Assembly (NCBI RefSeq): GCF_000143415.4
Contig: NW_003314342.1
Location: forward strand, 206,074-270,073
Length of the DNA stretch: 64,000 bases
From: Selaginella moellendorffii
Lineage: Eukaryota; Plantae; Lycopodiophyta
Direction: 5' to 3'
The notes beneath the pieces are model-generated. The model made no database searches and was not told where the DNA came from. It was given only the letters and a program-made list of their open reading frames with translations. Positions 14,679 to 52,170 of this stretch are shown here, in pieces. The position numbers and the translations under genes are program-made. The first letter of the stretch is position 1, and each line of letters opens with the position of its first letter.

Positions 14679-14792
14679 TTATGACATATCAACGCCATTA
14701 TCGAGGGCATCAGCCATACCGTTGCGATTTCTCCCCACATCCACTCCCATGGCCAGCATCATCACAACAAACCATGGCCCCATGTTCTTCAT
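14679..14792 (-). pseudogene. CRP-7 relic (signal-peptide part only)
   Basis: Reads MKNMGPWFVVMMLAMGVDVG, then a 1-nt insertion and divergence. A family-type promoter with TATAAAT lies upstream (about 14867-14874, minus strand). Confidence 0.6.
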
Positions 14793-15252
14793 GACTTGCT
14801 GCAAAAACTAAGAGAAACAATCTCTAGTATACTGGAGAGAGGTGGTTTGATCTGTGATGCCCATCATATTTATAGCTCAAGACGCTAGAATGCTCTTGGG
14901 AAGGCATCTAGAATATTTGAAAGCTAGTTGTTCCGTGTTTGTCAATTCCTTCTCTTTTCTATAATGCTGGGTGGGGCATGCAACACGAAGAAGGAAGTAA
15001 AACTGCCACGCAAGAAAAAATCAGTGGGCAGGCCTGGAGTCAAAATGAAGTAAACTCTTGAAATGAAGCTGTGAATCCAGATGAGAAATAGAGAGAACAG
15101 ACATTTTTTGTCAAGGCCTGGACAGTTTATATATTATTGCTGGATCTCATGCAATGCCATACAGAAAACTATTCTTCTTTCCAGACCCTGGCACTGCAGA
15201 ATGATGAATTCAGAGGAACGATGCTGGGGTTGACCCCTTGAAACGGGAGGTT

Positions 15253-15450
15253 TCAGTTGTGCCAGCAGCGATTGTTGCACCAGACCCAACCCCTCTGGCA
15301 ACGGTGGCAACTGTTGTCATACCAATACCACCCCGACTGGCAGCGCTGGGCAGCAGCCTTTGCGATTCCTCCCACGTCCACGCCCATGGCCAGCACTATC
15401 ACAAACATGGCAAGCGCCAAAAACACCACCAAGAAAGCCTTGTTCTCCAT
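15253..15450 (-). CDS. Secreted Cys/Trp-rich peptide CRP-8 (65 aa, 2 modules); promoter inverted
   Basis: MENKAFLVVFLALAMFVIVLAMGVDVGGIAKAAA followed by QRCQSGWYWYDNSCHRCQRGWVWCNNRCWHN. Confidence 0.8.
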   Translation of the reverse strand: MENKAFLVVFLALAMFVIVLAMGVDVGGIAKAAAQRCQSGWYWYDNSCHRCQRGWVWCNNRCWHN

Positions 15451-16062
15451 GATTTGCTGCTCAGACTAAGATCAAGTAGGCTTGTAAATGCTAGAGTGAC
15501 TTTGGAGATAAGGATTTGAAGGATTGGAGAAGCATTATAGGAAAAAGAAGAATTGGCAAACACGGAACCACTTTTACTGGACTAACTTTCAAATATTCTT
15601 CCAGAGATAAGAAATAAGCGAAGCCGTCCCAAGACAACTGCCCAGCCACCATCTAAATTGTGCTGCCTCGAGCTATAAATACGAGCCCCTCCTGCCTCAC
15701 AGATCAAACCATTCCTCTTCTAGCTTTGCCAAAACTTTACAAGAGTTTGATTCAAAGTTCCATAGAACTTCCATGCTAATATAAACATGAACCTAATACC
15801 TTGTCTTCCGTTTCGACCACAGACTCAGTACGGCCGCTTCCAGTCACCCGCAACATTAATCAAAGTGGTTCGTCTTTTCTCACTGGCAGGCTCTTGACAA
15901 TCTCTTGGGCATTCTAGAGCAATCTGCAACAATTAATGGAAGTGATATCAATAATTATCAAGATTTTATTCATTAAAATTGTTTTTCTTATTTAATTTAC
16001 TTATAATTATTTTCTGTTATTCTATTAATTAAATGTTGTACTTGTTGACTCTTTAAATGGAC

Positions 16063-17424
16063 TCATGTGACGCAGCTGACATGAGCACGTAAAGCGCCAG
16101 AGTCCCCTGGTTTCATCTCCAAGAGTTTCTCTGCGGCACGAGCTGCAACATTGATGTTCTTGCCGTTACCACGAACTTTGCAAGCGCTGATGAAGCTCTT
16201 CCACGCGAGGAAATGCGGCTGGAAGGGCATCACCAGCAGCAGACCTTCGGCCTTGGCAACCAGCCCGGCCCGTCCCAGCACATCTGCCATCGCCTGGAAG
16301 TGAATCACATTTGGAGAAATACTGTACTCCGCCACCATAGATCGAAAGTAGTCGAGTGCCACACGGAGCTTCCCACCGTGATTGCAAGTCAGGAAAATCC
16401 CCTGGAAACTTATCTCGTTTCTCGCCTCGCCCTCCATCGCCATGCTGCCAGCAAACATCGCGCGCTGTGGCATCCGTGCAAACATCTTCCTGGCTTCTTC
16501 GAGGTGGCCGTGGTTGGAGTAGGCCAAGATCATGGCAGTCCACACCACGTCATCGTGATAAGGAGCTCGATGGAAGAGAATGCGAGCTTCTTCGAGCTGG
16601 TTTCTCTCGGCCAGTGCGGTGATCATTGTCGACCACGATGCAATGTTCCTCTGTGGCATGCCATCAAACAGAGACCTTGCTTCTTTCAGACTGGACGTTG
16701 CTGCTAGCATTGCGTTCCACGAGCTTAAGTCGCGGTGTGGCATTTTACTGAAAAGCTCTTTGGCTTTTTCCATATGCCCAAGCTGGGCATATGCAGTGAC
16801 AAGAACAGTCCATCCCAACTCGTTGGTTTCGGGGATTCTCATGAACAAATTTAGCACGTCGTTAAAAAATCTTTTCTGGAATACCCATTATACATAACAG
16901 TCCAAGAAACTAAGCATTCCATCAAAGATCTGGCTTGCTTGATCCATATGCCCCTTATGGGCATATGCTGTAAGTAGCGAGTTCCAGCAAACTACATCCC
17001 ATTCTAGAACACGATCAAACAATGCTTGGCACTCCTCCAAGTTTCCACGGTTTTCATGAGCCGTGAGAATAGAGACCCATGCAATAATATCTCTTTGTGG
17101 CAAACAGCTCTTTTGCTTCCTCAAGATCCGCATTTTGGGCATAAAGCGCCAAGCATCAAGTTCCAGGAGAATCTGTTGGGCTCATGGATGGCTGATAAAC
17201 ACCTGCCATGCTCGATCCCCGCGCTCGCACCTTCCTTAGAGCTGGATGAGAAGATTTGCGAGGTACCTGTTGGATTGGTGGTGAAGGATGAGCGCGTGGA
17301 GCCTGGCGCCATGACGCAAATCTCTTTTCTGGATGCAAGCTGCTGTGAGGAGTTGCGCGTAGTCGTCGTCGAGCGACAATGCACGCTGCTCTAGATCATC
17401 CACGGCCTGTTCTAGAGGCTTCAA
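16063..17424 (-). pseudogene. PLS/E-class pentatricopeptide repeat pseudogene
   Basis: PPR motifs (WNSLLTAYAHKGHMDQASQIFD, WTAMILAYSNHGHLEEARKMF) and an E-domain (MPFQPHFLAWKSFISACK) are spread over several frames with frameshifts and deletions. Confidence 0.8.
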
Positions 17425-17814: not shown

Positions 17815-17900
17815 TTATGATCCATACCAGCGCTATCCTCTAGGTGAGATTCCTCCCACATCCATGCCCATGGCAAGCATTACAAACATGACGAGCACCT
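17815..17900 (-). pseudogene. CRP-9 relic
   Basis: Minus strand reads MFVMLAMGMDVGGISPRG*RWYGS*: family signal peptide with a stop and lost modules. Confidence 0.55.
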
Positions 17901-18129
17901 AAAACAACAATCTTTTTGCTGCTAGTAAGCTTGTTATATACTAGGCTCATAGGGATGGCATCAGTTAGTTCTTATCTCTTTGAGTTCCGTGTTTGGGAAT
18001 TTCTTTTCTTTTTTTCTATAATGCTGGAAAAAAGAAGAAATTCCCAAACATGAAACTTGACGACAGAGTCCCAACACAACTTTATAGCTGCCTTGAACTA
18101 TAAATATGAGCCCTTTCTACTGTACAAAT

Positions 18130-20356
18130 CAAATTGTGCCAAGAGTGTGAGGAAAAGGGTACATACTTTGTTTAATTGACGATAGTTAATGTAGAAATAA
18201 ATACTCCTATCAAGCTTCATCACATGAGGTTCATATGCCTAAAGATTGCATGACTTTTGAATAACTCCATTTTCCAACATCTCCTTGACGTTTGCATATA
18301 AAATCTTGATCTTTTTGGGTAATTGACAACGAATAAAAACCTTAATTGAACAAGCATCCCCAGTTAGAATAAGATGATATGTTATAATCTTGGCTCTATA
18401 TGAGAAGTCAAATTCAAAGAAATTTGCATACTTCTCCATGAGTCGGTCAACCATTGCAATATAAAAACCGTCGGAGGGATTAGAAAAAGAAAGAGAGAAA
18501 CATAACAGAAACTTAGGAGAAAGTAATGGGGAGACAAAAGTGATGGAAGTAGAGGTAGAAGCAAAAGGACAAAGATGTATAAAAGTGAAAGGAATGGAAA
18601 AAATATCAAGAAGTATGAGACAAAAGGGAGAAACTTCAAATCATATTTGGCATGATTGTGCCACAACCAATTCATACTAATGATGAAGTCAAAAGCTTGA
18701 TTTAACACCACTTGCAATGACTATAACTCAAACTCGAAATTGCTTACATGCACAACTAAATCCGCTTCATCCCACACACATACATGTGTATGACCATTGC
18801 CATAAAGAATGAAAAATGGTTTTACCACATGACATAATGTAGATGGCAACGTGTGGCAACAAGTCAAGTAATAGAAGATAAACTTGAATCTATATTAACC
18901 AACACAAAAAGAATAATAAAAGACCTCTTGTTATAAAAACGAGTTTGGAAAATAAACATTGAATTAATTGGTGTTAAATGAACCCCTTAATGATACTCCT
19001 AAAAGAAAAATGGAAGGGTTATTGATTTATTTGTGCAATGTCCCTTTTGTTACTCACATGACTTTTGTTTTTCAAATGCATTTCAGTGTCTAGACCTTTC
19101 ACTACAGCAGTATCAACAAAACATTGTTGATGCTAATGTTGCAAATGTGACTTTAGGTGTCGAAAGTTACATGTTGGTTAGTCCTTTCAAATATTCTTTC
19201 CTTACTGCCATGACAATAGGAGGTCGGTATTGTTGGACCCTTTATTAGTCCTTCTTGTTCAAGTGTTAATAAACTAAACTTTGCATTTATATTTGGCCGG
19301 ATGAGCATAAGGATGGAATTCCTACATGTCTATTTAACTAAGTATATTTGGCCCGACTTGTTAGTTCTCTTTTGTTCTGTTTTATATTAGCTTGACAAGA
19401 ACCTTCGTGTATTGGGATTAGTCCCTCAATATTCATTAAATGATAACTTACCGTGTCTGCAAAACACCTTTACTATCATGCCCTTTGTATTAGTCTCATT
19501 TCGGTCCTAAATGCTATTTATAGAAAGTGTCTAGATTTACTCATTTGGTATAGATTGTCCTAAACATAATGGTGTTTATCCCATATCCAAATTCATAATT
19601 TAGGGACATTCCATATGTAATAAGTTTTAAACTTGTCCTAGAGCTTGTCCCAATCGTCAATATTTCCAAATGCACATTTGAAGACGTCCGGGAGAATACT
19701 CTAATCCTCATAAGTGGTTGTGCTCAAACCATTGTACCACTTTAGCATCATTGGAAACACACAGGAAACTCATGCAAATGTCAAATATCATCCCAATAAT
19801 GATATGCCCACAGAAGGAACTCTAGCCGAACTCGAGGATTGGCAGTAAGAGTAAGAAGAATTGCAAGCTACTATCAATTGAGTTTGGTTATTCAACTACA
19901 ATCATATAACATTGAACAATTGCACCAACTATTGCTCCAAAAACAAAGGAAGAGGAAATTGTTACTTTGCCATGAAGAGAGCAAAAGAAAAGAAATGGAA
20001 AAAGCTAGAAGGAAAAGGAGATCTAGACAATGCAAAAGCTAGATCTAAAAAAAAAGCAAAAGAAAAGAAATGGAAAAAACTAGAACAAAAGAGAGATTTA
20101 GACATTTCAAAAACTAAAACAAAAATCCCAAATCCAAGCACTCTTTAGGGACAATCAAAATTGCCCCTCATCTCCACCAATATGAGTGCATGGAACATAG
20201 AAAGAAAATATAAGAAATATACATATTAATTAACCCAGAAACCCTAGTTTATATACTGGAGTGAGTGGTCTAGATTGAAATCAATATGATATCTATCAAA
20301 ATCCCACTATATTAATATTAGTATACAGTATTGTAACTATATACTTGAACTTCACA
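18130..20356 (-). mobile_element. Truncated degenerate Ty3/Gypsy element with 176-bp LTR and tRNA-Ala-type PBS
   Basis: LTR 20181-20356 (TGTGAAG...CACTCATA on minus), PBS TGGTGGAGATGAGGGG, decayed gag, protease (FDFIISMNWL) and start of RT (VKEMLENGVIQKS). Confidence 0.7.
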
Positions 20357-28323: not shown

Positions 28324-30036
28324 TCAGAGCTGGAAAATTGTGGTGGTGGAGCTGATCGCGTTGTAGATGAGCGTCCCCGCTGTGGGAGTGAACTGCTTGG
28401 TCACCAGCTTGATGGCTTCCTGCGACGCAATCCCCCCGACGACAGCGCCAACGCAGTGGATCTCCCCGCCTCCAAACCGGCAAAACTCGTACACGAGCTC
28501 CTCCGAGACGCCACCGTCCAGTCCAATCTCGCCCGCCAGTTTGTGCGCAATCGCCCCGACCTTGGCCGCGTCCTCCTCCACCGTCTCGTCCGCCATAGCC
28601 CCCGGGAACCTCCCAAACTCTTCGGCGAATCTGTCCACCGCTCGAAACATGAGGTAGATCGCGTAGTTTGTGTTGTCTCCCTCGAACGGGAGATACTTCT
28701 GGAGCTTGGCCCCGACCTCTTTCAAGCCCAGCTCCTCCGCCAGCGAGCGGTACCTCAGCACCCTCAAGTTCCTCGAGTTCTTGCAAAAGTGCTTGATCGC
28801 GGCCCTGGAGATGGAGTCCGGATCTCTTCCCAGCTGCGAGAGGATGCTCCTTACGTGGGCTTCCACGGCCGAGACATCCGACTCGGCCTTGGCCTGGTAG
28901 CAGCGCTGGAGGAGGATGTAGTACTCGGTGAAAGAATGCATGTCCGGGATGGCACCGTCGAGTGGAAACTCTCCGCCACCCTCCGAGGCCACGAATCTCT
29001 TGAGCGCCGCCACGAGTATCCAAAAGTCCGAGGAGCTAGAGTCGACGTCGGCAGCGCCGTCTTCCAGGATGGCTTTCACTTCCGAGCTCAGCGATGGCGG
29101 AGACCAGACTTTGCTCGCCGCCGCCACCGCCTCCTTGTAGTTGTCCTCGTCCTGTGCCTGCTTCTTCGACGCCACCAGGGACTTAAACTCGGATCTCTCC
29201 TTGGTGGTCGACGGGAGAGCGCCGCCGTGCTTGCTCCTCCACTCCTCACACACCTTGAGAAGGATGATCGCGAAAGGGATGTGCTTGTGGACGAGAGAGT
29301 CCTCGGTCTCCAAGTTAAACTCTTCGACGAACGTGGTGAGCTCCGGCCATGGCCTGTGGAGCCGGAGATCGCTCACGGTGTTGTCGGGCTTGCTCTCGAT
29401 CACCGCGTGCTCGCGGAGGCTGATCCTCACGTACCCGGTCAGTCCATAGGATCGCGCGACGAGCAGCATCACGGAGAAGCGCCGGCAAACCTCGTCCAGG
29501 ATCACCAAGCTCCTGTCACGCATCTGGGTGGCGATCACGAGCGTGAACCTCGCGAAGAATCCCGGGTCGGAGTCAAGCAGAGACTCGGGCGAGGCGTCGA
29601 TGTGGTCGATCAACACCGAGTCGTTCATCTCCTGGAGCAATGCGGCCATGCTCTTGGCTCGCGGCTGGCCTAGATTCTCGGCGCTGAGGAGGAAATTGTT
29701 GCCAAGGTCGGATTCATGGACCAATCCCCCGTCCACGGCCGTGACATTGCCAATCCCTCCCAGGACGAGATTCTTGAGCGCCTCGCTGCCCGTGGCTCCG
29801 CAATTCAAGAGGCAGACGCTGGCTTGCTCCAGCGCGCCCTGCCCGTGCTCGCCCCAAATCCGGAGCTGCCGATCATACTTGTTGCTCCTCGTCGCCGCCG
29901 CCGCCGCCGCCTTCTTTTGCTCGTCGCCGCTGCCGCCATTGGCGTGCGCCATCAAACCTGGGCAGTGGCGAATCGCAGCAGCCCCGTCGCGCTCCTCCTT
30001 GCCCGCCGCTGCTGCCTCCTCCCGCTCGCGTTTCAT
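28324..30036 (-). CDS. AXR1: NEDD8/RUB-activating enzyme E1 regulatory subunit (AXR1/NAE1), intronless
   Basis: KYDRQLRIWGEHGQ, LLNCGATGSEALKNLVLGG, HKHIPF, PLDGAIPDM and GGIASQEAIKLVTKQFTP in one 570-aa ORF. Confidence 0.93.
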   Translation of the reverse strand: MKREREEAAAAGKEERDGAAAIRHCPGLMAHANGGSGDEQKKAAAAAATRSNKYDRQLRIWGEHGQGALEQASVCLLNCGATGSEALKNLVLGGIGNVTAVDGGLVHESDLGNNFLLSAENLGQPRAKSMAALLQEMNDSVLIDHIDASPESLLDSDPGFFARFTLVIATQMRDRSLVILDEVCRRFSVMLLVARSYGLTGYVRISLREHAVIESKPDNTVSDLRLHRPWPELTTFVEEFNLETEDSLVHKHIPFAIILLKVCEEWRSKHGGALPSTTKERSEFKSLVASKKQAQDEDNYKEAVAAASKVWSPPSLSSEVKAILEDGAADVDSSSSDFWILVAALKRFVASEGGGEFPLDGAIPDMHSFTEYYILLQRCYQAKAESDVSAVEAHVRSILSQLGRDPDSISRAAIKHFCKNSRNLRVLRYRSLAEELGLKEVGAKLQKYLPFEGDNTNYAIYLMFRAVDRFAEEFGRFPGAMADETVEEDAAKVGAIAHKLAGEIGLDGGVSEELVYEFCRFGGGEIHCVGAVVGGIASQEAIKLVTKQFTPTAGTLIYNAISSTTTIFQL

Positions 30037-30158
30037 GCCTGGAGCATCGGCGCAAACCCTAGCCTGTCCCCGGAAGAACCCTAAAATGGTAAAGCCCTAG
30101 TACGCATCACCTTTTCAGCTGGCAAAAATACGAAGTAAATTTCGCACCCTAAAATCTT

Positions 30159-31901
30159 TTACCTGCCTTTCAGCTGATCGTAGAAAGTAACTACCTCGGG
30201 GTGAACTCGGATCTTGAGGGGATCGAATCCCAGTAGCCGCAGTCCGTGCAAGCTCCGTACTCTAGAGAGCGCGACGTACACCATGCCGTACTCAAAGGTC
30301 CTGGAGAGGTCCGTCTCCACGCAGTCGAGCGTCATCCCCTGGCACTTGTGGACGCTCAAAGCCCACGCCAGGATCAATGGAAGCTGCAATCTCTTGGCCA
30401 CTTCCACCTCGCCTTCCATGACGCTCCACGCCTCCGGCCGGATGATCCACTCGCTAGAACCCGAGTGATTGAATCGCACCACCGGGAGTCCTCCGCCTGG
30501 CGAGATCCGGAGCTCGCTCTTCTCCGGGGCCGTGAAGCCCACCACGATCCCGCGAGCTCCATTCACGAGCCCCTGCTCGGTGCCGAGGTTCTTGATGAGC
30601 ATCACTTGGGCTCCGATCGCGAGCGTGATCTCGGCTTCCGCGCGGCTGCCGTTGAGCATCTGTGTTCTTCCCGAGTCCTTGGCGGAGAAGGTGACGGACT
30701 TTGACGATGGGTTGAGTGACCGGAGCTTCTGCTCGTTCTCGCGGTCGACGTCGGCTCGCCGGGGATAGAGTCGCGTCGGCTCGATGCCTGGAGCAGTGGA
30801 GATGCTTGTGCAAGACTTGAGCCTCGTCTCGGTGGCGAAAGAGCACTCGCCGCGGCGGATCTCGTTGAGCATCCCGACGAACTCCCGATCAGACTGGCGG
30901 AAAACCTGTGTCAGCTCCATCTGGAGATCGAAGCATTCCTTCCAGCACTTCGCGTTGAAGACGAACGACTTGGTCTCTCCGGGCTTTTGAACTGGCGGGA
31001 GCTGAAAGAAATCGCCGGTGACGATCAGCTGCAAGCCACCGAAACGCTCTTTGCTCCTCCTCACGGCTCGCCCCACAAAGTCCACCTTGTCGAAGAGCTC
31101 CGCGTCGATCATGCTTATCTCGTCAATCACCAGAGCCGCAGCGTTGAGCCATCTCTGTTTCTTCTCCTTGCTTCTCATCACCATGTCGACAAGCTGCTCC
31201 TTCTTCGAGAGCCCAATGCCCACTCCAGCGAAAGCGTGAAAGGTAGTACCACCGATCGCGCACGCAGCAATCCCGGTTGACGCTGTCACGTAAACTGCCG
31301 ATGGATGGTAGACAGTCCTCAAAACTTGGATGGCTCTCTCGAGAATATAGCTCTTTCCTGTTCCAGCCGAGCCCGTCACAAAGACCGATTGCCTGTTACA
31401 CACAGCCTCCAAGACCCTGAGCTGCTCGGGAGAAGGAGTAGCCTCTTTCGTCTCAAAGTTGCCATTTTTGTTGCCAGAAGAAGTTCCTTCGTCCGCGGTG
31501 CCCATCTTCACTGCCTTGCAAGGACCAAAACTTTCTTTCTCGGGACTTGGCCGCTTTCTAGTCTCCCTCCAGCCTTCACTCTCCAAGTTCCTCACAAGAG
31601 TATCTTCTTTCCGGACGAGCGGCGGCGCTGGAATGCTGGGCTGAGCTCTGACGGTGGAATGGATAACTTCATCGTCCGATTCCCCTAGAACGATCACTTC
31701 CGGCTTCGATTTGGACGACTCACGAATGGGGCTGCTCGTAATATCGATCACTTCCTGCTGGGATGGTGTAGGAACCAGCGTACTACCTGACATTCTCGCC
31801 TGTCGCCGCGCAAGCGCCAGGTCCCTCTGCCGTAGGGCTCGATTTCTCTGCTGTTCCGTCAATACCCTCGACTGATCGTCTTTCAGCATGATCACATCCA
31901 T
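30159..31901 (-). CDS. PIF1: PIF1-family 5'-3' DNA helicase
   Basis: GSAGTGKS, TASTGIAA, DEISM, GDFFQLPPV, LVNGARG, LAWALSVHKCQGMTLD and YVALSR motifs. Probable 5' UTR intron at about 31910-31966. Confidence 0.93.
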   Translation of the reverse strand: MDVIMLKDDQSRVLTEQQRNRALRQRDLALARRQARMSGSTLVPTPSQQEVIDITSSPIRESSKSKPEVIVLGESDDEVIHSTVRAQPSIPAPPLVRKEDTLVRNLESEGWRETRKRPSPEKESFGPCKAVKMGTADEGTSSGNKNGNFETKEATPSPEQLRVLEAVCNRQSVFVTGSAGTGKSYILERAIQVLRTVYHPSAVYVTASTGIAACAIGGTTFHAFAGVGIGLSKKEQLVDMVMRSKEKKQRWLNAAALVIDEISMIDAELFDKVDFVGRAVRRSKERFGGLQLIVTGDFFQLPPVQKPGETKSFVFNAKCWKECFDLQMELTQVFRQSDREFVGMLNEIRRGECSFATETRLKSCTSISTAPGIEPTRLYPRRADVDRENEQKLRSLNPSSKSVTFSAKDSGRTQMLNGSRAEAEITLAIGAQVMLIKNLGTEQGLVNGARGIVVGFTAPEKSELRISPGGGLPVVRFNHSGSSEWIIRPEAWSVMEGEVEVAKRLQLPLILAWALSVHKCQGMTLDCVETDLSRTFEYGMVYVALSRVRSLHGLRLLGFDPLKIRVHPEVVTFYDQLKGR

Positions 31902-34201: not shown

Positions 34202-37200
34202 ATGGATGATGCCGGAGCTCCGGATTCCTCTTGCATTGTAGATCGCGAGCAGGGAGGAATCGGTCAAGAGAATGGCGCGGCGGCAATGCAGGAGGAGCGA
34301 TCGGGCGGCGAACCAGCTACCGATGTTCCAGAGCTTCCAGAGATCGTCTTGACCAAGGCGCTGTGGCGGCAGATTAGGAGCTTGCAAGAGACCGAGAAAG
34401 AGGTACAAGAGAGGCTAGAGAGGCAGAGGGTCCAGCAGCTGGTCGACAAGGTAGAAGACGAGGTGGAGTATGAGGGAATTCTGGACGATGTGTGCTCGAG
34501 GATTAGAGCCGAGGAGGAGGCCATGGAGGTGGAGCGACGAGAGCGTGAGTGGGAGCTCGAGCGTAGAGAGGAAGAACTGGAAGAACAGGTGGAAGTGTTG
34601 AAGGATAGAGTTAAGAGATTGGAGGAAGAGCTTAGAATGGCACAGCTTGAAAGTACGCCGGCCGACGTGATGCAGAAGATGCTCTACGAGGGGGATGGAA
34701 ATCAAGCTCTGATGATCGAGAATGTGGTGCCGAAAGATATCGAAGTGCTCGATGGTGGTGGTGGTGGTGATGGCGATGGTGGTGACAAGCCGCTGCCAAA
34801 TCCCACCCACGACATCCTCGTCGCGTTTGAGGACATGCTCAAGGAGGCGGACGAGCGGCACGATCGAGAGAAGAAAGCTATGGAAGATACCATTCTCGAG
34901 AAAGAGAAGACCGAGAGAAAGTTTCGGCACGAGCGGTATGAATGGCGTGCTCGTCTCAAGCAGATGGAGAGCCAGATGCTGGCGATGGAGAAAGAGATTG
35001 GACGCGCTTCCGGACTGCTGAAGGAAAGAGATTCTGTCGTGGCGATGGAGAAGGAGCGGAGACTGGCCGCGGAGGAAGCGGCTGCAAAGTTTTCTAGTCT
35101 GCTCAAGGATGAAAGGTTGGCGCACAAATTTGCGACGGTAAAGCTCAAGAAGGTCGAGAGTTTTTTCAACAAGCTGAAGGACAGGATAGCGAGAGAGAAA
35201 GCTGGGAATGCCAGCAGTGCCTTCCTCACGGAACTTGAGAAAGAAGTTGGGAGGCTCTCGTCGATTTTCAGCGTGAAAAAAGACTTGCACAAGGCGATGG
35301 AAGGCGAGCAGTTTGAAGCGTTGAAGAAGCAGCGTGACGCAGCCGTGGCCGAGAGAGACAAGCTCGAAGAGAAACTTAACCGGTTGCTAAAGAGGTCTAG
35401 GGATCGAGAGGCAGAAATCGATGCGATGTGGCTTGAACGGGAGAAGTTACTTATCGAGAAGGTGACTTCACTGGAAGAGAGGACGGAACGGTATGAAGAG
35501 GATATTGCGTCGGAGAAAAGATCGCGGAGACAAAATGCCGGAGAGCACCGGAAGGATTGGGATAACGAAAAGAGTGCGCTGGAGGAAGCCGTTCGGGATA
35601 GAGAAAATGCTCTAAAAGCACAGAGAGAGGAGACTCAACGTCTTATAGAAGAGAAGGACCGAGAGCTTCATACGCTTAAAACGGTGCACCAACAGCTGCT
35701 GCGCGACCTTGCTCTGTATAAGAAGCACACGAAGCAGGACCTTGAAGAACGAACCGACTCTTCTCAGGATACCAGGCCGGAACAAAGTGTCGACCAAAGT
35801 GGCGATACAATGGCTGTGGACCTTGAGAGACATTCAGAAGGAGCTTCAAACAGATCGGACAGCGTGGGAACAGAGAAGGCGAGTTCCGAAAGAAGCGAGC
35901 TGGAAGAGAAAGTTATTGACACACTATCGCTGGTGGAGGAGCTGAAAAGCAAAATGAACGAGAAGGAAAGCCAAATGCAGTGGGAAAGAAAGCAAATGGA
36001 GACCATCGTAACCAACAGGACTGCTGAAGCCGAAAGCCTGAGGAGACAGCTCGAGTCAAAGGAGCTTGAGATGGAAACTCGGGTCGACAAATTCCGGAGC
36101 GAAATGCAGCTTATGGAACGGGAGCTTGAGAAGGAAAGACTGGAGAGAGAAAGTGTCCTTGCATCGAAGGGGAAGCTAGTGGCAGAGGTGCAGAAGAGAG
36201 TGAACGAGATGGTGCAAGAGCTGTCAAGTTTGAGGTTGGAGTTGCGCAAGAAAACGGAGGAGCTTGATTGCTTGAAAAGAGAGAAAAGGATGGAAGAAGC
36301 TCGCATTTCGAAGGTGCTTGTGGTCCAGAAAGAGCTCGAAGACGAAGTCTCAAGGTTGCAGCACGAGAACGCGGAGCTAAGTTTTGCAGTAGCAGCTCCA
36401 GAGAACGGCATGGACAGTGAACGAACAGGAGACACAAGCAGCAGTTCCGGTGACAAGAGACACGAAGAGTGGCAATTTGCTCTGGAGAAGGTTGCCGTAT
36501 TCGACAAGCAGATTAGCGAGGCAATGCTTGCGATACAAAACCTGCGGGAAGAGCTGTGCGTGAAGGAGGCTGAGCTACAAAAGGCCAGGAGTGAACCCGA
36601 ACTGGAGCTAGAAAGACGGGAAGAAGCGTGGACGCAAGAACGAGAACGCCAAGAGGCAATGTACGCACAGAAGGTGGAAACTTGGAGGAGAACGGAGCAG
36701 AAAATTCTGGCCGAGAAGACGGAGCTGCTAAAGGTGCTAGAGACGGAGCGCTCTGAGAGCTCCGATGCGATCGCGCTCTTAAACGGGACCATCAGAGAAC
36801 TGCAGTGGACTTTGATGAGGAAAGCTCCGGGCGAGAGCGTGGATCACTTGTTCAAGAGCACGCCAAAAGGTGAAATGGTTAAAGTTCACGCTTCTCACTT
36901 GAACGAGGTGGATCAGTACATATATGAGCTGAAAGGCAAGGTGGTGGAGCTGGAGAGATCGAAAGTGAAGAAGCCAACGAGAGAGGAAGAGCTGGACGAA
37001 GCCTTGCTTCATGTGGAGAAGGAGATGCTGAGCGTTTCTCCGGATAGGAGGTCTAGGCTGATCAAATATGGTTCTCCGCCGTCAGTGCGACCGCGAGCAG
37101 TCGAGAGAAGCCTCACGAGCTTGATGCTCCAACCGGGAACTTCGAGTGATCGATCATGGAATCCTCTAAGGTACTCGAAACTTTTTTCTTTCTGTTTTCT

Positions 37201-37726
37201 ATTCTCACTGTTGGAGATTTTAGCTGCGTGTCCAGGGATAACACGATCGAGGACCGATGGACTCATGAATTGCCGGCTCCGGAAGCTCTTTCTCTGGCAG
37301 TACCACCGCGGCAGCAGAAAAAATGGATAGTTGACACTTCCTGGCTCGATCAAGTGCGAAAGGTACACAAACTTTGGCAGCACTTCATGCGAAGCTTACA
37401 TACTCTTGACAGGAGCACTCGTTTCTAACACAACAGCTTGCTTTAGAGCGTCAGAGACTCGCAGCTCTTGGCCAGGTGATTGAATTGACGCTCGTAGATT
37501 TTGATGCTAGCTGCAACGATGCTCGTCTACACAGGTCGAAGCTGAGAATCACTGGATGGAGGCGATGATGCTGAGAGCCTTGGAGCAAAAGAAAGAATGC
37601 GAGCACAAGCTTTCACAGCTTCAAGACAAGGTCAGTGCAGTGAGATCTTAGATTTCCAAGCTCAAGGAGCTTTGTCTGCGTTGGTTCTTCCAGATTTCTC
37701 CTTGGAGCCAGAAAAGAGCGAGCTAG
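34202..37726 (+). CDS. Long Glu/Lys/Arg-rich coiled-coil protein of unknown function
   Basis: First exon of about 990 codons with heptad composition, then several short GT-AG spliced exons ending ISPWSQKRAS*. The 3' structure is inferred. Confidence 0.7.
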
Positions 37727-44914: not shown

Positions 44915-45708
44915 NNNNNNNNNNNNNNNNNNNNNNNNNNNNNNNNNNNNNNNNNNNNNNNNNNNNNNNNNNNNNNNNNNNNNNNNNNNNNNNNNNNNNN
45001 NNNNNNNNNNNNNNNNNNNNNNNNNNNNNNNNNNNNNNNNNNNNNNNNNNNNNNNNNNNNNNNNNNNNNNNNNNNNNNNNNNNNNNNNNNNNNNNNNNNN
45101 NNNNNNNNNNNNNNNNNNNNNNNNNNNNNNNNNNNNNNNNNNNNNNNNNNNNNNNNNNNNNNNNNNNNNNNNNNNNNNNNNNNNNNNNNNNNNNNNNNNN
45201 NNNNNNNNNNNNNNNNNNNNNNNNNNNNNNNNNNNNNNNNNNNNNNNNNNNNNNNNNNNNNNNNNNNNNNNNNNNNNNNNNNNNNNNNNNNNNNNNNNNN
45301 NNNNNNNNNNNNNNNNNNNNNNNNNNNNNNNNNNNNNNNNNNNNNNNNNNNNNNNNNNNNNNNNNNNNNNNNNNNNNNNNNNNNNNNNNNNNNNNNNNNN
45401 NNNNNNNNNNNNNNNNNNNNNNNNNNNNNNNNNNNNNNNNNNNNNNNNNNNNNNNNNNNNNNNNNNNNNNNNNNNNNNNNNNNNNNNNNNNNNNNNNNNN
45501 NNNNNNNNNNNNNNNNNNNNNNNNNNNNNNNNNNNNNNNNNNNNNNNNNNNNNNNNNNNNNNNNNNNNNNNNNNNNNNNNNNNNNNNNNNNNNNNNNNNN
45601 NNNNNNNNNNNNNNNNNNNNNNNNNNNNNNNNNNNNNNNNNNNNNNNNNNNNNNNNNNNNNNNNNNNNNNNNNNNNNNNNNNNNNNNNNNNNNNNNNNNN
45701 NNNNNNNN
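44915..45708. other. Assembly gap (N run)
   Basis: 794 N bases inside the RT region. Confidence 1.
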
Positions 45709-50360: not shown

Positions 50361-50364
50361 TCCA

Positions 50365-51407
50365 ATCTCTAGTATACTAGCGAGAGGTGGTTTGATCTGT
50401 GTTGCCCATCATATTTATAGCTCAAGACACTAGAATGCTCTTGGGAAGGCATCTAGAATATTTGAAAGTTAGTTGCTCTATGTTTGTCAATTCCTTCTCT
50501 TTTCTATATTCCTGGGGCCGCTGGGGCATGGATGAAGTTTGCAACACGAAGAAGGAAGTAAAACTGCCACGCAAGAAAAACTCAGTCAGCAGGCCTGGAG
50601 TCAAAATGAAGTAAACTCTTGAAATGAAGCTGTGAATCCAGATGAGAAATAGAGAGAACAGACATTTTTTATCAAGGCCTAATTGTTGGATCTCATGCAA
50701 TGCCATACAGAAAACTATTCTTCTTTCCAGACCCTACTGCAGAATAATGAATTCAGAGGAACGATGCTGGGGTTTACCCCTTGAAACGGGAGGTTTCAGT
50801 TGCGCCAGCAGCGATTGTTGCACCAGACCCAACCCGTCTGGCAACGGTGGCAACTGTTGTCATACCAAAACCACCCCGACTGGCAGCGCTGGGCAGCAGA
50901 CTTTGCGATTCCTCCCACGTCCACGCCCATGGCCAGCACCATCACAAACATGGCAAGCGCCAAAAACATCACCAAGAAAGCCTTGTTCTCCATGATTTGC
51001 TGCTCAGACTAAGATCAAGTAGGCTTGTATATTAGAGAGAAATGGTTTGATCTGTGAGGCAGGAGGGGCTCGTATTTATAGCTCGAGGCAGCACAATTTA
51101 GATGGAGGCTGGAGAGTTGTCTTGGGACGGCTTCGCTTATTTCTTATCTCTGGAAGAATATTTGAAAGTTAGTCCCGTAAAAGTGGTTCCGTGTTTGCCA
51201 ATTCTTCTTTTTCCTATAATGCTTCTCCAATCCTTCAAACCTTATCTCCAAAGTCACTCTAGCATTCCTCTTCTAGCTTTGCCAAAACTTTACAAGAGTT
51301 TGATTCAAAGTTCCATAGAATATAAACACGAACCACTTTGATTAATGTTGCGGGTGACTGGAAGTGGCCGTACTGAGTCTGTGGTTGAAACGGAAGACAA
51401 GGTATTA
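50365..51407. repeat. Segmental duplicate of 14818-15873
   Basis: High identity over about 1 kb including the CRP gene and flanks, apart from two inverted blocks. Confidence 0.9.
50796..50993 (-). CDS. Secreted Cys/Trp-rich peptide CRP-10 (65 aa, 2 modules)
   Basis: MENKAFLVMFLALAMFVMVLAMGVDVGGIAKSAA followed by QRCQSGWFWYDNSCHRCQTGWVWCNNRCWRN. Correctly oriented TATAAAT at 51074-51080. Confidence 0.85.
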   Translation of the reverse strand: MENKAFLVMFLALAMFVMVLAMGVDVGGIAKSAAQRCQSGWFWYDNSCHRCQTGWVWCNNRCWRN

Positions 51408-51899
51408 CAAGAACAACACTGATTTGCTTGTTGTGGCATAAGCTTTGGCATCCTTGACTCTCATGTAGGCATACTTCAAAGAGCTGGTATTCCAAAGATT
51501 GAGATGATTTTGATGAGTGCTAATGACAAGCTAATGAATACCTCATACATTACAAGCATTACAAGTGATGTTGGTGGTGTTCATAACTAACATACGGGTG
51601 TATTTGCATACATTAAACTCTTTAGCTTTTTCTTATGAAGCTTAGTTTCTTGTGAGCGTCGAGAGTTGAAGTGGCTACTGGGTAGCGCCACAAACATCAC
51701 CCAATTACTGCTCTGTCCCCCTAAGCTTGGGATACAGTTGTGAACTCAGAGGGATCTTCCGTGACTGGAATTCTACTTGGAGTGGTGATTGTCAGAAAGC
51801 CACTTCCACTACACTCTGGTTTATGTACTGATCGATGCTCCTCAGCGGCGCAGTGGGAAGCATCTCTATCTCGGGCAAGCACAGGATCATTGCCCACAC

Positions 51900-52170
51900 C
51901 AAGGTATGCAACACGGTGCATGTATGGCCGCTGCGACCATCTCACCCAGGCTTGCTCCTGGAACAGCATGATCACTGCATATGCCCGAAATGGGCATCTG
52001 GAGGAGGCCGAGAAGATCTTTGATTCCATGCCCGTGGCAATGTTGTGTCCTGGACTACCGGGAACTTGCAGCATGGCAAATCCTCCCAAGCATTGCAATT
52101 CTTCCGGAGGATGATTCTAGTCAAACCAAGGTGACCCTCCTCGTGATCTTGGACACATGCTTGAGCTTTT
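51900..52170 (+). pseudogene. PPR gene fragment
   Basis: MYGRC...SWNSMITAYARNGHLEEAEKIFDSMP, followed by frameshifted sequence. Confidence 0.6.

Follow-up and report, generated by a model that had tools for sequence, protein, structure and literature searches.

Where closely related genomes differ by small inversions, inverted repeats of 3–75 nt regularly flank these, and for repeats that are short or imperfect the authors of that work favour microhomology-mediated break-induced replication over classic template switching (PMC8755829). A four-point template-switching model yields an inverted duplication at the junction, which plain cutting and rejoining does not (PMC5453318). The locus described here is like these template-switch mutations and microinversions in its in-place reversal, its short and imperfect boundary repeats, its junction by-products and its fixation in a lineage (PMC5453318, PMC8755829). 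However, the microinversions that separate human and chimpanzee measure 17–33 nt (PMC8755829), whereas the present case concerns 227 bp in plant paralogues, includes the core promoter and is one of three clustered events. A length of 227 bp is far above that of both these microinversions and the short template switches (PMC8755829, PMC5453318). The class of mutation is a known one, and here it is clustered within one promoter family.

Bacterial invertible promoters, such as fimS and the phase-variable invertons, are also similar in that a promoter segment of a few hundred base pairs is bounded by short inverted repeats and is found in orientations towards and away from a gene. Unlike fimS-type systems, the locus is eukaryotic and nuclear, has no recombinase in the ORFs scanned, has lost one of its repeat arms and presents its two orientations at two diverged loci. 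A eukaryotic parallel is the mating-type flip-flop of methylotrophic yeasts, in which the choice of the expressed gene depends on an inversion between inverted repeats. That system relies on homologous recombination between identical repeats of kilobase length, spans about 19 kb and shows both states within one strain, whereas the repeats considered here are imperfect and only 12–13 nt long. We know of no working invertible promoter for plant nuclear genes. Inverted duplications and palindromes that arise by fold-back replication of the ODIRA type (PMC10766183) are resembled by the third paralogue (CRP-9), where an inverted arm abuts a forward arm with a short spacer, and by an inverted duplication at one of the blocks described below (D); here, however, tens of nucleotides rather than kilobases are involved, with no amplification.

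The CRP-8 and CRP-10 cassettes

The window, by which we mean the whole stretch of 64,000 nucleotides that was analysed, is plant nuclear DNA, with large ORFs that match PPR repeats, a PIF1-type helicase, ThiF, a retroelement RNase H and a GH16 fragment. A tblastn search with the CRP-8 peptide identified six family members on the plus strand at 0.7–7.2 kb and, on the minus strand, CRP-7 (ATG at 14791), CRP-8, a remnant of CRP-9, and CRP-10 (ATG at 50993). The CRP-8 ORF (15253–15450, minus strand) is intact, as the first-pass annotation had stated, and runs from an ATG at 15450 through 65 aa to a stop codon, encoding a Trp-rich peptide with six cysteines behind a signal peptide. Its duplicate, CRP-10, is found about 35 kb away, is near-identical and has an equally intact ORF (50796–50993, minus strand; 65 aa plus stop).

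The two cassettes were compared by self-BLAST of the window. Positions 14818–15486 were collinear with 50363–51029, and 15487–15722 matched 51266–51033 on the opposite strand (97.0 %, E 2e-110). The segment immediately upstream of CRP-8 (B′, 15487–15713, 227 bp) is the reverse complement of 51041–51266 upstream of CRP-10 (B, minus strand), with 97.4 % identity. In global alignments of the core of B, 214 of 223 columns were identical in the inverted orientation as against 116 of 239 in the forward orientation, indicating that B is not simply a palindrome. By these two methods, the reversal between collinear flanks that had been claimed for this segment proved exact to the base.

Block B ends in AATG (15487–15490 and 51041–51044) and CATT (15710–15713 and 51263–51266). 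On the gene side, the CRP-8 leader (15451–15486, minus strand) is collinear with CRP-10 at 50994–51029, and its first 32 nt (15451–15482), when aligned apart, are identical to CRP-10. The following 11 nt of CRP-10 (51030–51040), located at the gene-side junction and homologous to the CRP-7 leader, are missing from CRP-8. Both the AATG/CATT breakpoints and the loss of about 11 bp at this junction, which the first-pass annotation had also described, hold exactly at the two copies. The imperfect inverted repeat seen earlier at the CRP-10 breakpoints was recovered as well. It has a gene-side arm at 51030–51044 and a distal arm, CATTCCTCTTCTAGC, at 51263–51277, with 11 matches, one mismatch and one gap; this repeat of 12–13 nt, which flanks B in the CRP-10 arrangement, was equalled by 0.3 % of 39,363 equally spaced pairs from the window. 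In CRP-8 the gene-side arm is destroyed and only AATG (4 nt) is left.

Beyond B′, segment C (15714–15793) is collinear with 51267–51334 and has the repeat arm AAACATGAACC at its distal end (15783–15793). A 12-nt insertion in this part of the CRP-8 upstream region (15768–15779) resembles the preceding TTCCATAGAA copied in tandem by slippage. Self-BLAST detected a second inverted block, D′, 80 bp further upstream than B′, with 15794–15877 matching 51407–51324 at three mismatches in 84 positions. D′ ends in a right repeat arm, GGTTCGTCTTT (15867–15877), which is complementary to the left arm AAACATGAACC at 9 of 11 positions; 2.7 % of random pairs were as good as the two arms that bound D in the CRP-8 cassette. 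The left arm (11–14 nt) occurs collinearly and again inside the inverted match, and so constitutes an inverted junction duplication. Neither the inversion of D nor the rearrangement of CRP-9 had been part of the first-pass annotation.

In the CRP-10 cassette, the outer end of D (51324–51407) is the precise limit of homology. The cassettes share no homology beyond D and their outer flanks are unrelated on both sides, which indicates that the copies represent a 1.06-kb dispersed duplication and not alleles or a haplotype artefact. Alleles, or a homology that resumes past TE insertions, were rejected as no further homology was found. An origin of D as part of a larger inversion that included the PPR gene was rejected because the right flanks share only generic PPR-motif similarity. 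A PPR-like ORF fragment is present to the right of the CRP-10 cassette (51740–52114, plus strand) and has only a generic motif likeness to the PPR ORF at 16063–16857. A single inversion of B and D together, between two copies of AAACAC(G)GAACCACTT, was rejected since the order that it predicts does not match the one observed. When D was considered as the relic 5′ end of another CRP gene, a stretch at its edge that is like the distal promoter motif scored 31 against a null of 19.4±3.3, and the leader-like part of D did not stand out when tested as the start of a relic CRP gene. On these scores D is at most a weak candidate for such a relic.

Promoter orientation and TATA elements in the family

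The promoter and leader of CRP-7 (14792–14990, minus strand) served as an outgroup. They are in the forward orientation and collinear with the CRP-10 promoter through the TATA element, CACAGATCAAACCA and the leader. The conserved blocks CATTATAG, AAACACGGAAC, TTTCAAATA, GAGCTATAAATA and CACAGATCAAACCA are all in the same order in the two promoters, and the collinearity runs into the leader and includes the 11 nt that are missing from CRP-8. This alignment across the junction supports the orientation in CRP-10 as the norm of the family, in agreement with the polarity implied by the first-pass annotation, and the orientation in CRP-8 is most likely the derived one. The inverted TATA half of CRP-9 leaves room for a history in which the segment has flipped back, and the window contains no outgroup for C or D. 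No inversions were found among the promoters of CRP-1 to CRP-6.

Each cassette also carries a forward promoter of the CRP-7 type behind CRP-8 or CRP-10. In the CRP-8 cassette the leader and ATG of CRP-7 follow directly on this promoter. In the CRP-10 cassette, the corresponding forward copy (50365–50535, minus strand) includes the TATA element and has no gene behind it, being cut off at 50363. This orphaned promoter identifies the CRP-10 cassette as the one that was truncated.

CRP-9 is a decayed paralogue with a coding remnant at 17845–17910 (minus strand) and a promoter at 17952–18140. A stop codon lies within the remnant of its signal peptide. The TATA half of the promoter (18087–18133, plus strand) has the inverted orientation seen in CRP-8, the distal half (17952–18027) is forward, and the halves abut in a 75-nt palindrome (17983–18057). 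The inverted arm ends within a few nucleotides of the CRP-8 boundary. Beside the promoter, at 18144, begins a repeat that is common to 59.7–62.2 kb. CRP-9 is about 20 % diverged and its alignment is thin.

The first-pass annotation had described a TATA element that points towards the gene in CRP-10 and away from it in CRP-8, and this opposition was confirmed. In CRP-10 the family TATA box GCTATAAATA is on the minus strand at 51073–51082, with its T 87 nt before the ATG; in the CRP-8 flank the same motif is on the plus strand at 15672–15681 and faces away from CRP-8. The distal promoter motif AAACACGGAAC (15558–15568, plus strand) is inverted along with B′. After the flip, CRP-8 shows TATAATG, a conserved but weaker TATA-like motif, at −89, and thus at about the original spacing from the ATG, in place of the TATAAATA of segment B, the T of which is at −87 from the CRP-10 ATG; the TATA-like motif of CRP-7 is at −83. 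The candidate substitute TATA of CRP-8, TATAATGC (15532–15539, minus or gene strand; its T 89 nt before the ATG), is the reverse reading of the CATTATAG block. This block is common to four of the five promoter copies (P10, P8, P7 and the forward arm of CRP-9), with the orphan copy reading AATATAG.

These positions put the strong TATA, and with it the presumed start site about 27 nt downstream, at −225 and aimed away from CRP-8. The relocated TATA points to the 3′ end of the minus-strand PPR ORF (16063–16857), and antisense transcription into this ORF is possible. TBP binds the TATA element with only modest polarity, and direction is influenced by the order of the upstream elements and TATA. 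With TATAATG at −89 and an intact ORF, silence of CRP-8 cannot be assumed, and the ON and OFF states that the first-pass annotation read from the two orientations are hypothetical. As judged from the arrangement of motifs, CRP-8 is more likely to have been re-wired or weakened than cleanly switched off, and its expression could be weakened or altered and need not be silent. A base-resolved inversion that moves a whole core promoter between near-identical young paralogues amounts to a natural experiment on the effects of TATA position and promoter orientation. Continued expression of CRP-8 would mean that strict TATA polarity matters little once a reverse TATA-like motif is present, whereas silence would make the inversion a one-step route to pseudogenization in a defence-type peptide family.

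Origin of the inversions

The reading that we favour, with a probability of about 0.7, is that these are fixed small inversions, bounded by inverted repeats and generated by replication template switching or break repair, with CRP-10 representing the norm and CRP-8 the derived state. Blocks B (227 bp) and D (84 bp) would have been reversed in place after, or partly during, duplication of the cassette. In a template switch, the growing strand would jump to the complementary strand at one repeat arm, copy backwards and then return. The 11-nt loss at B and the 11-nt inverted duplication at D would be expected by-products of such a switch, as the four-point model would give a loss at B with point 1 ahead of point 3, and an inverted duplication at D with these two points in the opposite order. 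Duplication would have produced the CRP-10 cassette, probably together with the flip of D, as the outer edge of D is precisely where the copy ends, and B would later have flipped in CRP-8 with loss of the 11 nt. The one-off template switch that was initially put forward as the most likely origin fits the in-place inversion between short repeats, the junction deletion and duplication, and a divergence equal to that of the flanks.

Substitution divergence was 2.6 % inside B (6 of 231) and 3.5 % in the flanks (23 of 651; Fisher P=0.67). This equality indicates that the flipped block and the remainder of the cassette are of the same age and that the block is not undergoing homogenization, and it argues against B′ having been copied from CRP-10 recently. 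When both regions were folded as single-strand DNA, their stability did not exceed that of shuffles (z +0.8 and +1.7), suggesting that no strong hairpin drives the events; a stable hairpin or cruciform was likewise unsupported by this comparison. An Rfam search gave no match.

Two inversions within 400 bp and a third rearrangement, of inversion type, in CRP-9 are many for independent rare events, which suggests either that the site is unusually prone to inversion or that its history differs from the one proposed. The three inversion-type rearrangements in one promoter family point to a promoter that may be locally inversion-prone, and they suggest that regulatory change in this plant may arise to a notable extent through template-switch mutation. 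Taken as a single locus, this is an ordinary kind of mutation.

The inversions might instead have been fixed after one-off mis-repair of two double-strand breaks, in which end joining put the fragment back in reversed orientation, or after microhomology-primed break-induced replication, and not through a switch at the fork. Exact sharing at the B breakpoints is limited to 4 nt (AATG/CATT) and 11 nt were lost, as is typical of end joining, and microhomology-mediated break-induced replication is the route preferred for short or imperfect repeats (PMC8755829). The inverted duplication of the left arm at D, however, is not produced by simple re-ligation, and two flipped fragments around one that is not flipped are an improbable outcome of random re-joining, so that this origin appears unlikely overall.

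A little less probable again is a history in which the inverted state was ancestral to CRP-8 and CRP-9, CRP-10 regained the normal orientation in an error-prone duplication with template switches at both repeat pairs, and the 11-nt loss in CRP-8 came later. The TATA half of CRP-9 is inverted like that of CRP-8 and ends close to the same boundary, and CRP-9 would require one more inversion from a CRP-8-like state as against two events from a forward promoter. The halt of homology at the outer edge of D points to a flip of this block in the course of the duplication, and the count of events is about four under either history. However, this history would need both an exact reversal that restores collinearity with CRP-7 and, independently, the deletion of 11 nt in CRP-8. 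The repeat from 18144 masks the CRP-9 junction on the upstream side, so no shared junction can be demonstrated, and the comparison rests on the thin alignment of this diverged paralogue. Fixed inversions with CRP-8 as the derived copy are preferred because they need no exact reversal.

More doubtful is the idea that the promoter is a quasi-symmetric module, bounded by inverted repeats, with a record of repeated flips in CRP-8 and CRP-9 and perhaps, in the reverse sense, in CRP-10. The strong TATA would be near one end of the module and the conserved reverse TATA-like motif near the other, and each flip would swap them. If true, the module would act as a toggle, recurrent in evolution or even somatic, by which a fast-evolving family of secreted peptides diversifies its expression.

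It is very improbable that the CRP-8 flank is an assembly or cloning artefact and in truth collinear with CRP-10. No direct point speaks for this; the sole run of N in the window, a gap of 794 bp (44915–45708), is located between the two copies but is remote from every junction, and the junctions themselves are in continuous sequence. The inverted block has its own substitutions, its 11-nt loss and a nearby 12-nt insertion, the unrelated cassette flanks argue against collapsed or duplicated alleles, and an assembler would have had no reason to flip 227 bp between repeats of 4–13 nt, twice.

The least probable reading is a working invertible promoter, to which the first-pass annotation had seen a resemblance: the segment would flip in living plants and set CRP expression ON or OFF, as a promoter-bearing segment with a 12–13-nt inverted repeat in the CRP-10 arrangement and inversion-type changes in three related promoters might suggest, but the gene-side arm in CRP-8 is gone apart from 4 nt, the orientations are at different loci, B (2.6 % against 3.5 %) is as old as its cassette, and a Pfam scan that covered part of the coding potential of the window, in nine ORFs comprising the longest and some shorter ones, detected PPR, PIF1 helicase, ThiF, RT/RNase H and GH16 domains and no recombinase. 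Nothing suggests that the segment still flips, and a programmed switch is highly improbable.

Coding sequences and other features of the window

The coding sequences of CRP-8 and CRP-10 differ at six nucleotides, all of which are nonsynonymous (6 of 6, with no synonymous differences), and all cysteines are kept. This number is too small for a test (0.75^6, about 0.18) and fits diversifying or neutral evolution. When the differences were polarized against CRP-1, at least three of the six amino acid changes were assigned to CRP-10 and at least one of the six to CRP-8, with no excess decay in CRP-8. An exact-sequence look-up in a protein collection found neither the CRP-8 nor the CRP-10 protein, a word search for protein relatives found no homologue, and a metagenome scan with the conserved start of the coding sequence gave no match. 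CRP-7 (14680–14791) is a 37-aa ORF that has a signal peptide and lacks the cysteine-rich part. Immediately behind …AACG (about 14720) is a GT that might act as a splice donor, so that CRP-7 may be a spliced gene or a pseudogene.

Two further regions of the window were recorded in the course of the analysis. An uninterrupted ORF of 1042 aa (34202–37330, plus strand) matched no Pfam family even at E=1, with the exception of a chance-level match to CW_7. At 28324–31901 (minus strand), between the CRP cassettes, a 570-aa ORF with a stretched ThiF-family match adjoins a 580-aa ORF for a PIF1-type helicase, and this region may be a Helitron with a captured E1-like fragment.
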